Below are positions 31,106 through 36,308 of a stretch of 64,000 bases of DNA, piece by piece (within the stretch, counting starts at the first letter, position 1; the number at the start of each line of letters is the position of its first letter). The DNA lies in assembly GCF_006345805.1 (NCBI RefSeq), contig NC_043002.1:9672001-9736000 (forward strand), given 5' to 3'. The notes under the pieces were generated by a model. The model did no database searches, was not told the origin of the DNA, and worked only from the letters and a program-made list of their open reading frames with translations. The position numbers were made by a program, and so were the translations under genes. The stretch comes from Octopus sinensis (taxonomy: Eukaryota).

Positions 31106-33561
31106 TTAGAATTGATTTCCTTAGGTTCACCGATTGTGTGTTTATTAGTTGCAGTTATTTGTTTGCGACTTTTAGATTTAGCCTGTGTAGTATGAGACAC
31201 TAAATTATTTACTTCCTTAACAACAAAGAAGATGATGACAAATATCTGTCAAATGTAAATAATGTACACAATTCCTCATCTCTCAAATGTAGAACTGTAT
31301 CATCAATTGATGTTTCGTTAGGGAATAGCAGACATCATTAATTTTAAATGGATATGGCCATCATCAATAAAGACCCATGTGTCTTCTCCATCAAATGCGC
31401 CTAATCGTAAGCGGCCCTTATCGGTGGGAGAGATCAAGTCTCAAATGGAAGATTTTAGACAGCGATGAAGCTTTTTTTTTTCTGACTTTCCTTCATCATC
31501 AGATGAGATTGATAGCACAAAAGAAAGTGATGCTCCAACTAGCCATGGGAAAATTGCTCCGATTTTTCTCCAAACGTACATTCATTTGACAACAACAATG
31601 TGGAAATCTAAGATGAGTTTACGCTCAAATGATTTCATTGTTCTTTTGTCTTTATATTTGTAATCTAAAAGAGTTAAAACATCATTTTTATTGCTTTTGC
31701 ACTTATCTAACGTGAAAGGATGAAAGCTAAAGTCGACCTCGGCTGAAATTGAACTAAAAAAAACGTAAACGTGGACGAAATGCCACCAAGCGTTTCGACT
31801 AGTGTCGTAACAATTCTGCCAGCTCACTCCCTTCAAATTTTAAATAAGTGAAGTAGCTATGTCAATGGATCATTCGAGTAAACCATAGAGTTTACGTGCT
31901 AGTAAGTTAGAAGGTATAGTGAAAGGACAAAGCCGACGTTTCGCATTGAAGCAGTTCGACAGTAAGAAAATAGACGGCTGGATTTTACTTTAGCGAAGTA
32001 CGAGTCTCAGTTCGAACCTTTGTAGTTAAGGGTGGAGAAGAAAAATGGAGAGATCGAGAAGAAACCTAGAAGTACAAGCGGAGCGAAAGATACCTCAATA
32101 AAGTAGTGCTTCCCTAAGATATTGCAGGAAACTTAGTTTATGTTGATAAATTATCATTAGTACGTTACGTTTGCTTGCTTAATTTTTTTTACTAGATTCT
32201 TGATTTCCTTAGGTTCACCGATCGTGCGTTTATTAGTTACAGTTATTTGTTTGCGACTTTTAGATTTAGCCTGTGTAATATGAGAAACTAAATTATTTAC
32301 TTCCTTAAGTAAAGGTAACCCGCTTTAATTCCTTCCGATTTTAGTCCTATTTGAAACGGCTGTAAGGCTGCGAAATTAAGAGTAGCTGAATATGAGTGCT
32401 CAATTATACTCCTATTAAATATTCTATGATACCAAATGATGAGGATGGAAATTTCTTTCCAATAACGTGATAAAAATGTTCGGGATAGAATTTTTATGTT
32501 ATTGACGAAGAGTAGATTATACCAGGAAATTTCATTCCTTTTTCCTACCACTAATAGTTGTATGTTTCCAAGAGGTAAAAATCAACACCTTTAGCAGCCG
32601 AGTCATTAGTACGCTTATCGTTACTTCGTATTCTATTTTTTTTTTTTTTGTTAGTGACTTAGTATCTCCAGTATTCAAGAGCCAGCTTAAGCCTAATAGA
32701 AAATAAAACCTGTGTAGCTACAACGTTTAAAGACTATGGTTATATATACCTACATAAGTAAAATACTGTTGGGACAACGGAGACAGTACGATTCAGGGCA
32801 GAGCTGGTAATTGATGGCAGGGTTCGCTCACAGCTTTGAAACCTCTACATGGTGTTTTAACCAGGAATATGGTTCATAACGTTCATGGTCATCATCATCA
32901 TCATCATCAGCAGCAGCAACAACAACAATAGCTGCAACAACAGATGTTAGACTGTCATCAGTGGAAGAGAAGCGCTGCGAACGTCTTGACAGCTTTTATG
33001 GCATTGAAGACTTATGTGACTTTAAGAGCTGCTGGAAATCGTAGGTACTTAACATTCACATAATTAATCGACTGCACACCATAGTGACATCTATTTCATA
33101 CTTGTGTCAACTAGATGTGCATCACTTACATTTATCACTTGCTGGCTATTGTATAAAAAAGCACGTTAAACATATTTGCTCAATATAATAAATATTGTTT
33201 TCTCTTACTTCCAACCGACATTCTTAACCTTTTTTTAATAAATAGGATAACACGCGACCTACTAGGAGTAAAATAAGATATTTTATTTTTTGCTTTATTA
33301 TATAATTCATACATCTTTAATACAAACTGAGTGATTTAGTGCTGAGAATATAACTGAAACCTCGTAATTTATCACCTGAACTCAGTGACATATCCAGGTT
33401 AATTGCATTGACGTCAGTCAATGAGTTTGTGCATCTAAACCGAATATCTGCAACGAAAGTTTCATAAATGTACACTGTTCACCTGGTGTGTACCGAAATG
33501 TACAACTCCTGTACTTCGAATTTTACCTTACCTTGTATTTTCTAGAAAATCTCTTGAAGAT

Positions 33562-33571
33562 ATGGGCGTTT
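33562..33571 (+). CDS. Orphan secreted protein, coding exon 1 (exon 33546-33571; MGV + 1 nt)
   Basis: ttttctag| acceptor, |gtaagt donor; phase 1 matches the next exon. Confidence 0.55.
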
Positions 33572-34090
33572 GTAAGTATCATATTCAATTACATTTGTTT
33601 ATTATACCTATTTCTTTATTACCCACAAGGGGCTAAACACTGAGGGGACAAACAAGGACAGACATAGGTATTAAGTCGATTACATCGACCCCAGTGCGTA
33701 ACTGGTACTTAATTTATCGACCCCGAAAGGATGAAAGGCAAAGTCGATCTCGGCGGAATTTGAACTCACAACGTAACGCAGATGAAATACCGCTAAACAT
33801 TTCGCCCGGCGTGCTAACGTTTCTGCCAGCTCGCCGCCTTTGTTTATCATACCAATGTGTGTGTGCGTGTGTCTGTGTGTGCCTGCGTGTTACCAATTAA
33901 GTATGATATAAATACAGAATTAAACAATAAATTAGTAATATTTAGGATAAGTCACTTGTGAGCAAAAAGCTCATTGTTTCTCAAAAGTACACAACAAATA
34001 AGAACTAAATCACACGTAATCTGTTGATCTTGAAATATTTATCAGATGTTATTCAGACATTAGGATTTCATATTTTACATATTTAAATTG

Positions 34091-34391
34091 GGATCTTTTC
34101 ACCTTGACCGGCAGATTTTTAAAATAATTTTTATGTAACTAAAAAATTTTAAACTTCGTATACTGGTAGAATGTGTTTATAAAACATCTTTTTCTCTTGG
34201 CTTTCTTGAGAAAATTCTGTAGTTTAATTTCTTGCATTTTGTTGTTTAATTTCTTGCATTTTGGCAATTTCAACCAATCAATGACGTCTATTGAGGTGAA
34301 TCCAATTTCTGCCGTAACATTTTATGGCGGCGTCATATGAAAATTACATAGAAATTATTTTTAAAATCTGCCGGTCAAAGCGAAAAGATCC
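34091..34391. mobile_element. Related GGATC-terminal MITE
   Basis: ggatcttttc...gaccggcagatttt / aaaatctgccggtc...gaaaagatcc; shares internal sequence with 35096-35525. Confidence 0.7.
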
Positions 34392-34706
34392 CTATATTGC
34401 AATCTTTCGTCTCTAGTAGACTTTTCCGTCGATTTCCGTAAAAAATTTTTTTTTTTTTACATATGGGCTTGCGGAAACTTTTGAAGTAATGAGAGCGAAA
34501 GAGACTAAGAGAAAGCGATTGTATGACGAGGGAAGTTCTTTTGAAGTTACCGTGCATGGGAGCATTGATGTACATGTGTGTGTGTGTGTGTGTTTGATGG
34601 GGTGTGGGAGACAGACAGTATGTTGTGTAATCGACGGAAAGGTCTACTAGAGACGAAAGATCGCCCCCTATATTGATATTTCTTAGCTATGTGTTTCTTA
34701 TTTTAG

Positions 34707-34870
34707 ATTGTCAATTTATATTAGCCTTATGTTTAGCGATATGGATTGCATTGATTAACGTTTCACCTATACAATCTGTTGTATTATACGATAAACGGGT
34801 TCGTGCCAACTTGTTACTGTGTATCGTACAAGACGCTGGAAAGACTGCAAACGAAACATTGGCTCTTTAT
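34707..34870 (+). CDS. Orphan secreted protein, coding exon 2 (signal peptide + first helix)
   Basis: ttattttag| and |gtgagt; (Y)CQFILALCLAIWIALINVSPIQSVVLYDKRVRANLLLCIVQDAGKTANETLALY; 164 nt, phase 1 to 0. Confidence 0.7.
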
Positions 34871-35095
34871 GTGAGTAATCACTAAATTCTTTATTCCTTC
34901 GGTTTTTAGTTTCTTATTATATAATGAATATCTCTATGATATCAGTATCAGCGACATTAATTAAGTTATGATATTGACGAATGTTTTCAAAAACGGAATT
35001 GTGTAAAATAAAGTACCTCACTTCTTAATCCATATTTCTATGCCATAATATATAAAAACCATCATTTGAAAATCACAAAATCTGTTAGTAATTGT

Positions 35096-35525
35096 GGATA
35101 TTTTCGGTTTGAACGGCAGTTTTTTCTAGCGGTGTCATATGAAATTATCACCCATAATTATGACCCTAGTATCGATCTATTACATTTCAATCTGTTTTAG
35201 GGTTAGGGTTAGTTAGGTTTGGTTAGGGGTGTGGCGAAGGGTATCGTTTTTTTCTTCAGAAATGTAAATAAACCCAATCTGTTTCTTAAATGAGGGACAT
35301 ATTCATACGGCACAGAATGTTTTCACCTCAATAGACGTCATTGATTGGTTGAAATTGCAGAAATTGAAGAAAAACCAACAAATATCTTACAAACTATAGG
35401 ATTTTCTCAATAAAGCCAAGAGAAAAAGATGTTTTATAAACACATTCTACCAGTGTACGAAGTTTAAAAGTGTTTAGTTACGTGGAAATTAATTTAAAAA
35501 ACTGCCGTTCAAACCGAAAAGATCG
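35096..35525. mobile_element. MITE, intact copy of the same family, with a TTAGGG tract
   Basis: Terminal inverted repeats ttttcggtttgaacggcagtttt / aaaactgccgttcaaaccgaaaa. Confidence 0.8.
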
Positions 35526-35924
35526 AAGTCCTGGTATTGACGAATATTTTCAAAAACGGAATTGTGTAAAATAAAGTACCTCTCTTCTTAATATTTCTTA
35601 TGCCATAATATATAAAAATCATCATATGAAAATCACAAAATCTGTTAGTAATTGTTTTGTATGTTTTTACACAGTGTGAAAACTCTCTACTGTTGCCATC
35701 AGTCTACTGCCGTCGCTTTACTAATACAATGTCCAATAAATGGAAGCTAGTATTTCCGAAAATGTACCTTTTCATAGATATGGTGACTCAAACTTTCCAC
35801 GTTAGTACATATAAAATATTTTTTGTCTATAAAAAAATATTACTTTTATTTTTACGTAGAGTTGATGTATTATATGAAATGATCATATATTGTGAAATAT
35901 ATATATGACAAATCTTAATTGCAG

Positions 35925-36155
35925 AAGATTGAGTCATCAATGTATGGCGCATTCAGTATATATTCTTCACTGATCAAGAATTATAAGCAAAGAGAATTTG
36001 AAGTTCTGTGTGCTCATGCTTTCTGTCTTGAAAAATCCTGTCCTTATCCAGAGGCGTGTTCTAATGCAACTCAACCAAAAGATGGTATGCACTATTGCTA
36101 CTTAAGAAAGGTCTATGATTGCTTGACTGAGCTGGTTAATCAATTATCGATACAG
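35925..36155 (+). CDS. Orphan secreted protein, coding exon 3 (six Cys)
   Basis: ttaattgcag| and CAG|gtgagt; 231 nt open, phase 0 to 0; KIESSMYGAF...LCAHAFCLEKSCPYPEAC...HYCYLRKVYDCLTELVNQLSIQ. Confidence 0.72.
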
Positions 36156-36263
36156 GTGAGTATTGTTGTTATTGTAATCAATGAACATACAAAAATATGA
36201 CCAAATGTACTCAACTTTTTTAGGGCTGTCAACGACTATATTGTTTGTGTCCTTCCTTTTTAG

Positions 36264-36308
36264 ATGGTAGATTTAAGTTTGAAGGTTGATTGGTTACTAG
36301 ACTGCTAA
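36264..36308 (+). CDS. Orphan secreted protein, terminal coding exon (MVDLSLKVDWLLDC*)
   Basis: ccttcctttttag| acceptor; an alternative acceptor exists at 36224. Confidence 0.55.
   Translation: MVDLSLKVDWLLDC

Follow-up and report, generated by a model that had tools for sequence, protein, structure and literature searches.

A five-exon octopod gene for a secreted protein of a fast-evolving family with a predicted long-chain cytokine-type fold

In this work, we analyzed a stretch of 64,000 nucleotides of Octopus sinensis DNA (contig NC_043002.1, positions 9,672,001 to 9,736,000 of the forward strand; hereafter the window, with positions counted from its first letter) and delineated a spliced gene of five coding exons on its + strand, present as a single copy in the 64-kb window. 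That this gene is genuine and has this exon structure is, in our assessment, very likely. Its putatively secreted product belongs to a fast-evolving protein family, and a structural model of a close paralogue suggests that it is probably folded like the class I helical cytokines, as a long-chain four-helix bundle with G-CSF, IL-6 and LIF as its nearest counterparts. An explanation combining the five-exon gene, the octopod family, the cytokine-type fold and a putative role as a ligand provides the best overall account of the observations, and we regard its being correct as a somewhat better than even prospect.

A corrected gene model with five coding exons

An initial annotation of the window had drawn a hidden four-exon gene at 33562-33571, 34707-34870, 35925-36155 and 36264-36308, and these intervals do splice to 450 nucleotides encoding exactly the 149 amino acids proposed, with GT-AG borders at all junctions. 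The first three of these exons are real and match octopod RefSeq exons at 70-76% amino acid identity, with near-identical splice-site flanks. The underlying claim is likewise supported, namely that a spliced gene lies hidden here and that its product is secreted and helical, with Cys residues and potential N-glycosylation sites. The fourth exon proved to be wrong, and a further exon of the cassette type had been missed.

In the corrected model (Table 1), the coding exons measure 10/164/126/231/168 nucleotides with intron phases 1,0,0,0; all five are open, every junction is in phase and eight of the eight splice sites are canonical. The precursor comprises 232 amino acids in its long form and 190 if the 126-nucleotide cassette is skipped. 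Each exon has a counterpart, with near-identical splice flanks, in the RefSeq models of O. bimaculoides and O. sinensis, for which we used the loci of O. bimaculoides LOC106871653 (L002) and O. sinensis LOC118763701 (L003) as references. The position of exon 1 corresponds to the annotated start codon in both (10001 in L002 and 8413 in L003; ATGGGCrTTTgtaagt). An in-frame alternative acceptor of exon 2, located 18 nucleotides downstream at 34725, is the one used by the current O. bimaculoides RefSeq models.

Table 1. Features of the locus, with the structural elements that the coding exons are predicted to encode
Feature	Position	Strand	Sequence and splice signals	Predicted structural element
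Proximal promoter (putative regulatory function)	33409-33470	+	TGACGTCA and TATA-like CATAAATG	
Coding exon 1	33562-33571	+	ATGGGCGTTT, Met-Gly-Val plus 1 nucleotide; donor gtaagt; intron phase 1	With exon 2: signal peptide and helix A
Coding exon 2, 164 nucleotides	34707-34870	+	Donor gtgagt; phase 0	Remaining signal peptide and helix A
Cassette exon, 126 nucleotides	35675-35800	+	42 amino acids, CENSLLLPSVYCRRFTNTMSNKWKLVFPKMYLFIDMVTQTFH; acceptor tttttacacag; donor gttagt; phase 0/0	A-B crossover loop with mini-helix and C-x10-C
Coding exon of 231 nucleotides	35925-36155	+	Donor gtgagt; phase 0	Helix B, Cys-rich B-C loop, helix C
Fourth exon of the initial annotation, rejected as coding	36264-36308	+	Within the conserved intronic block ~36156-36330	
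Last coding exon, 165 nucleotides plus TAA	41837-42004	+	Acceptor tttttcag; phase 0	C-D loop and helix D
Likely 3' untranslated region	42020-42386	+	CA-rich microsatellite, then AATAAA at 42381-42386	

The cassette exon was found by tblastn comparison with the O. bimaculoides LOC106873702 protein (P0002, a long form) and with both reference loci. It is included in the RefSeq X1 isoforms (P0011, P0007 and P0010) and skipped in the X2 isoform P0001, the short isoform of O. bimaculoides LOC106871653. The last coding exon lies 5.7 kb beyond 36264-36308 and was detected by tblastn at 41834-42001 (E 3.6e-18 with P0002 and 6.7e-15 with P0001). Here the sequence reads tttttcag followed by CTT at 41837, in phase 0 as required by the donor at 36155, and runs to a TAA at 42002-42004, so that the window protein ends in ...KHYLS; the last exons of L002 and L003 share the acceptor context of the window, tttcatatttttcag.

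Several features argue against the exon at 36264-36308. In O. bimaculoides its acceptor AG reads AA, and a CAA takes the place of its stop TAA in this species as well as in O. sinensis. Among the homologous proteins none ends in the peptide that it encodes, and no annotated isoform uses it; past the 231-nucleotide exon the homologues continue with a segment of ~55-60 amino acids (...DETLLIPR(F/Y)TS..HRQLY..AT.Q.LV.DL...EY.L...) and not with MVDLSLKVDWLLDC. The intron block following the 231-nucleotide exon is conserved as DNA, with a mean column identity of 89%. Since the whole block is conserved at this level, and since O. bimaculoides lacks the acceptor and neither homologue has the stop, we regard the proposed fourth exon as an intronic segment rather than a conserved coding exon. 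The 149-amino-acid product is a chimera, and the eight Cys residues and the C-terminal Cys ascribed to it are artefacts of the false exon, the real counts past the signal peptide being seven in the short form and nine in the long form. With 98% identity to the O. sinensis paralogue and ~92% to the O. bimaculoides one, the block 36156-36330 is better conserved than the coding exon next to it (82-86%), and either gene conversion or a role in regulation or splicing could account for this.

The N-terminus of the window protein is hydrophobic, with a Kyte-Doolittle mean over 11 residues of 2.9-3.0 across residues 7-20, and the protein would be secreted by means of a cleavable signal peptide with a putative cleavage site. 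The mature part carries the N-glycosylation sequons NET and NAT, and a third NxS/T motif (NVS, residue 21) ends the signal region. Signal peptide and both sequons had been predicted in the initial annotation and are borne out.

A previously undescribed octopod gene family

A first protein search returned octopod proteins only, with P0001 as the best match (70% identity), together with P0002, O. sinensis LOC118763701 (P0004) and an O. vulgaris hypothetical protein (P0005). Using a HMMER profile built from the homologues and the exon translations of the window, an exhaustive search of 1.84 billion representatives yielded 12 proteins at E < 1e-3, and word-indexed protein searches recovered the same set of members. 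The named members stem from O. bimaculoides, O. sinensis, O. vulgaris and Argonauta hians and are all annotated as 'uncharacterized' or 'hypothetical'; further members are unnamed exon-read-through open reading frames on contigs of one ENA assembly. In the literature we found no description of an octopod LOC106871653-like family. Judged from these sequences, the window gene, which had initially been described as an orphan, is a member of a previously undescribed, fast-evolving, multi-gene family whose named members are so far octopod only.

In the ENA assembly (ERZ21867824), contig ctg117151l (L001) carries homologues of the 231-nucleotide exon at 5498-5707 and at 10037-10255, 4.5 kb apart, and at least eight near-identical open reading frame variants (P0021-P0028) represent a locally expanded branch of the family. 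A tight tandem array as the arrangement in O. sinensis was considered and rejected: the three located paralogues lie at 3.8, 8.9 and 55.5 Mb of one chromosome.

The distant paralogues are only 25-30% identical to the clade of the window gene. Conserved in them are a signal peptide ending in a small-x-P-I junction, (A/S)-P-I, a C-x10-C pair after helix A and a (V/I)D..LL motif before the C-terminal amphipathic helix. The conserved core of the family reads Y..(V/L).KNQ...E(Y/L)..LCAPA......C.YP.ACS..T...D...YC.L, and six cysteines are conserved across it. All members share the Cys pattern of the 231-nucleotide exon, C-x(9-11)-C-x5-C-x12-C, which extends from the end of helix B to where helix C begins. 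Most full-length members carry several N-glycosylation sequons, up to eight, and a few (e.g. P0002 and P0007) carry none.

Exon structure is conserved as well. The coding exons measure 10/158/135/231/159 nucleotides in the gene of P0013, 4/155/135/231/162 in that of P0018 and 10/146/132/231/186 in that of P0011, in each case with introns of phases 1,0,0,0. In four of the four genes examined, the coding exon before the last has a length of exactly 231 nucleotides. Because the only model examined for each of the distant paralogues P0013 and P0018 includes the 'cassette' exon, we regard the long form as ancestral. The long form of the window protein bears all the marks of the family, namely C-x10-C, the four-cysteine pattern, (V/I)D..LL and the penultimate coding exon of 231 nucleotides.

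Predicted long-chain four-helix bundle

For structure prediction we used the long-form paralogue P0002, which is ~67% identical to the window protein overall and 72% in the 231-nucleotide exon, with a 17-row alignment including the distant paralogues and the four exon translations of the window. AlphaFold2 returned a model with a predicted local distance difference test score (pLDDT) of 78.1 and a predicted template-modelling score (pTM) of 0.74, comprising helix A (residues 21-51), a mini-helix (60-74), helix B (91-120), helix C (147-171) and helix D (194-223). It is the cassette exon that encodes the mini-helix, which forms part of the A-B loop.

When this model was compared with the PDB using Foldseek, the top match was G-CSF (1bge_B; E 0.077, probability 1.00, target-normalised template-modelling (TM) score 0.72), with a target-normalised TM of 0.75 for G-CSF 1bgd and a query-normalised TM of 0.56 for 1cd9_A. 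G-CSF was followed by IL-6, LIF, prolactin, IL-11, CNTF, CLCF1, IL-27 and GH, and target-normalised TM scores to G-CSF and IL-6 were 0.65-0.75 over ~205 aligned columns. Among the matches listed, all those with TM above ~0.3 were long-chain helical cytokines, and the non-cytokines reached TM 0.26 or less. The Foldseek viral library, which served as a negative control, gave nothing above TM 0.33 and only low-TM noise.

Taken together, these comparisons suggest that the long form of the window protein would probably fold as a long-chain four-helix bundle of class I helical-cytokine type, and the four-helix-bundle, cytokine-like idea put forward in the initial annotation is in keeping with the model. 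The C-x10-C pair of the A-B loop probably forms a disulfide in this structure, and the Cys-rich B-C loop is probably disulfide-bonded; the predicted pattern is C59-C70 together with two disulfides among C129, C139, C145 and C158. The short isoform, if made, should be expected to fold or act differently.

Comparison with known helical cytokines

The genes for GH, IL-6 and G-CSF consist of five exons with a first coding exon of 10-40 nucleotides, intron phases 1,0,0,0 and a similar exon-to-helix layout; the coding exons measure 10/161/120/165/198 nucleotides in GH and 19/191/114/147/168 in IL-6. The exon structure of helical cytokines was reportedly formalised by Betts et al. in 2001. Set against these vertebrate gene structures, the five-exon 1,0,0,0 structure and the exon-to-helix mapping of the octopod genes offer a lead towards a possible shared ancestry with IL-6/G-CSF/GH-type genes.

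In line with the G-CSF/IL-6/LIF group, the octopod proteins are secreted glycoproteins of ~200 amino acids without the signal peptide, with four long predicted helices, long A-B and C-D loops, a short helix in the A-B loop and, in C-x10-C, a Cys pair in that loop capable of forming a disulfide. Rapid evolution, as known for cytokines (PMC9465101), is another shared trait, octopod dN/dS (the ratio of nonsynonymous to synonymous substitution rates) being at or above 1. In contrast to this group, the octopod family shows no detectable sequence similarity to it, and the IL-6/G-CSF Cys/GL signature, searched for as a regular expression after PROSITE, is absent from every family member. The 26-residue B-C loop with its four conserved cysteines has no counterpart in the group, and the named members of the octopod family are confined to octopods.

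Among protostome proteins, Drosophila Unpaired (Upd1-3) are known ligands of Domeless, hard to trace by sequence and larger than the octopod proteins. No Upd similarity surfaced in our general searches, which included no direct Upd comparison. Upd1-3, which are mentioned in PMC13203501, resemble the octopod proteins in being secreted, glycosylated, predicted helical and fast-evolving.

A specific likeness to leptin, which had been read from short sequence echoes, does not hold, even though leptin belongs to the long-chain helical cytokine class. Leptin was not among the top 50 Foldseek PDB matches. The echo between HVLAFSKSCHLP and HA(F/L)C(L/F)EK.CPYP was recovered by hhalign with a probability of 0.9% over 23 columns, which is not significant, and a second echo, VSPIQS, is the conserved junction between signal peptide and mature protein in the octopod family. 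The octopod segment of the first echo starts at the end of helix B and continues into the B-C loop, whereas leptin Cys96 lies in the C-D region. Leptin has two Cys residues including a C-terminal one, and the C-terminal Cys of the octopod protein came from the false exon. The extra helix, too, is placed differently: it lies in the C-D loop in leptin and in the A-B loop in G-CSF, LIF and GH (PMC4063663), where the octopod mini-helix is also predicted.

O. bimaculoides LOC106871653 and LOC106873702 and O. sinensis LOC118763701 are direct homologues with 66-70% amino acid identity overall that share the exon structure, splice flanks and promoter block of the window gene.

Rapid evolution of the mature protein

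Among these homologues the window copy represents a distinct lineage. Its synonymous divergence (dS) is ~0.24 to both LOC106871653 and LOC118763701, as compared with 0.13 between these two, and O. vulgaris P0005 is a near-identical orthologue of the O. sinensis gene. Because of this difference in dS, and because O. vulgaris has its own O. sinensis-type orthologue, we consider the window copy to be a separate paralogue.

By the Nei-Gojobori method, the window copy gave dN/dS values of 1.15 with O. sinensis and 1.03 with O. bimaculoides, and these two gave 1.01 with each other; within the 231-nucleotide exon, the window comparisons gave 1.6-2.8. Because the comparison of L002 with L003 likewise gives ~1.0, a ratio of about 1 characterizes the family and does not point to decay of this copy. 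Of the simulated neutral copies that received 155 random substitutions, only 0.12% stayed without stop codons, which indicates that the reading frames are maintained while the mature protein diversifies. Only one of the first 66 nucleotides of exon 2, which encode signal peptide, differs from L003 (65 of 66 matching), and at 98% identity to L003 the 3' flank of the 231-nucleotide exon surpasses the exon, which reaches 82%. Conserved signal peptides and introns next to diverging mature codons are classic for venom and reproductive proteins. Fast evolution with dN/dS values of this kind is typical of cytokines (PMC9465101). Such evolution of the mature protein amid a conserved promoter, signal peptide and introns hides genes of this type from sequence searches.

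Within the last intron, the 1.5-kb segment 39880-41371 shares 97.3% identity with the corresponding intron of the O. sinensis paralogue, compared with ~74-76% for the adjoining last exon, a mosaic suggestive of patchy gene conversion between paralogues.

Evidence against a cytokine-type ligand and alternative explanations

A number of results weigh against the cytokine-type ligand that we favour. At the level of sequence, no Pfam cytokine family matched any of 16 family members even at E up to 10; the first member gave no Pfam match at all, and the five unrelated single-member matches (E 0.03-0.29) are not credible. Sequence and profile searches of the PDB returned noise only, with a Lon protease fragment (E 1.4) and a restriction-endonuclease-like protein (E 1.7) as the best matches. 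Similarly, hhalign comparison of the family profile with human G-CSF, leptin and IL-6, whose sequences had been verified as full-length against 1rhg_A, 8k6z_A and 8d82_D, gave probabilities of 0.25%, 0.9% and 0.07%, respectively. At the level of structure, all Foldseek E-values are weak (0.077 or worse), and the model is that of a ~67%-identical paralogue built on a shallow alignment. The up-up-down-down connectivity was read from the sequential alignment and not from coordinates, and the disulfide pairing is likewise predicted. The short isoform P0001 gave a poor AlphaFold2 model from a 6-row alignment (pLDDT 41.5), and its A-B link of ~3 residues is hard to reconcile with a cytokine topology, in which helices A and B are parallel. 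The B-C loop, with 26 residues and four Cys, is unlike that of known cytokines. At the level of the gene, a dN/dS near 1 would also be expected of a decaying copy, and the exact window product is absent from a collection of 5.8 billion proteins, in which the best match is 70% identical.

The alternative that survives best is that of a secreted helical protein which is not a cytokine, such as a lineage-specific exocrine or reproductive product (venom, pheromone, gamete recognition or carrier protein), the cytokine likeness being either convergent or an AlphaFold2 artefact of packing four amphipathic helices. We consider this alternative unlikely, though it deserves serious consideration: it would account for the restriction of the named members to octopods and the missing sequence link to cytokines, for a signal peptide, promoter and some introns that are conserved while mature codons diverge with dN/dS up to 2.8, for a Cys-rich B-C loop without a cytokine counterpart and for the weak Foldseek E-values. 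It fits less well with the outcome of the structural comparison, in which the listed matches above TM ~0.3 were exclusively long-chain cytokines aligned over ~205 columns and other helical proteins stayed at 0.26 or below. Moreover, a crossover topology agrees with the length of the A-B and C-D loops and with the mini-helix of the former, and exon structure and exon-to-helix mapping would resemble those of the GH, IL-6 and G-CSF genes.

It is improbable that the window copy is an unexpressed or decaying paralogue of a functional family that has merely kept its exons open. The absence of the exact product from the protein collection and the dN/dS of ~1.0-1.15 against both homologues would agree with decay, and noncoding parts with patches of 98% identity to the O. 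sinensis paralogue suggest gene conversion rather than independent constraint. Against decay, the five exons are open, the eight splice sites are canonical, the conserved Cys residues and motifs are all kept and the promoter block has remained intact; had substitutions been neutral at the divergence observed, so few copies would be left without stop codons (0.12%) that the intact frames speak for maintenance.

Finally, the four-exon, 149-amino-acid, leptin-like model as first written, perhaps as a minor alternative terminal-exon isoform, is hardly credible: the window does carry a good acceptor (ccttcctttttag) and an in-frame stop for 36264-36308, and 13 of the 13 residues of the encoded peptide, MVDLSLKVDWLLD, are the same in O. 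sinensis, but this conservation is one of DNA and extends over the entire intron block, O. bimaculoides has no AG at the acceptor, neither homologue has the stop, annotated isoforms make no use of the exon, the product would be without the helix D that is conserved across the family, and its comparison with leptin fails.

Promoter, 3' end and other elements of the window

The proximal promoter contains a perfect palindromic, cAMP-response-element-like TGACGTCA at 33409-33416, the sole copy in the 64-kb window, and ~50 nucleotides downstream of it a TATA-like CATAAATG at 33463-33470, ~95 nucleotides upstream of the ATG. Both elements are conserved in the two homologous loci. Their conservation is not specific evidence, because all of the surrounding sequence is conserved too, the block 33200-33600 being ~98% identical to L003 and ~90% to L002. 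On the 3' side, a (CA)n / CACGCA-type microsatellite of ~300 nucleotides (42020-42322) starts 16 nucleotides past the stop codon and is followed by the AATAAA of Table 1, a putative polyadenylation signal.

The window as a whole is AT-rich, repeat-laden animal DNA, and the introns and flanks of the gene contain several repeats. An element of ~185-240 bp resembling a short interspersed nuclear element (...ttacccacaaggggctaaaca...) occurs at 33600-33850, 39255-39490 and 40635-41052, two copies being arranged in tandem at 40635-41001 within the long last intron, and has many copies at the O. sinensis locus (88-93% identity). An element resembling a miniature inverted-repeat transposable element is present in two copies of opposite orientation, one in intron 1 (34089-34316) and one in the intron after exon 2 (35096-35524), and also lies directly upstream of exon 2 in the O. 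sinensis locus.

Outside the gene, two adjoining retroelements resembling long interspersed nuclear elements, with broken frames, occupy 51323-58629 (+). The first comprises a zinc-knuckle open reading frame, an Exo_endo_phos endonuclease, RVT_1 and zf-RVT; the second carries a further RVT_1 pair at 56996-58629. An open reading frame of 206 amino acids without a Pfam match is located at 22641-23261 (+), and towards its C-terminus (...LKVHVLHSHLDFFAENLGDVSYEHGKKFYQDISVME) it resembles the end of a transposase that has been domesticated or has decayed.

Proposed function and significance

Vertebrates have well-documented helical cytokines, as do insects in the form of Unpaired. In the mode of action that we consider the most likely one, if still tentative, the octopod protein would be released via its N-terminal signal peptide as a secreted intercellular signal, would act as a ligand for a class I cytokine receptor of the Domeless/gp130-like kind, docking at its cytokine-binding module, and would in this way activate JAK/STAT.

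A 2026 survey reported that molluscs possess a receptor called IL6R, JAK and STAT, and found no ligand (PMC13203501). The octopod family thus provides a concrete and directly testable ligand candidate for a molluscan pathway without a ligand in that survey. The stronger proposal, that its members are bona fide class I cytokines sharing ancestry with IL-6/G-CSF/GH-type genes and represent the missing molluscan ligands of Domeless/gp130-like receptors, is possible, albeit doubtful. On this proposal, skipping of the cassette would remove the A-B crossover loop and may yield a variant with altered or antagonist activity.

Overall, if this proposal were true, long-chain helical cytokines would extend to the Lophotrochozoa, which bears on whether the class predates the protostome-deuterostome split, and cephalopod immune or endocrine signalling would be opened to study.

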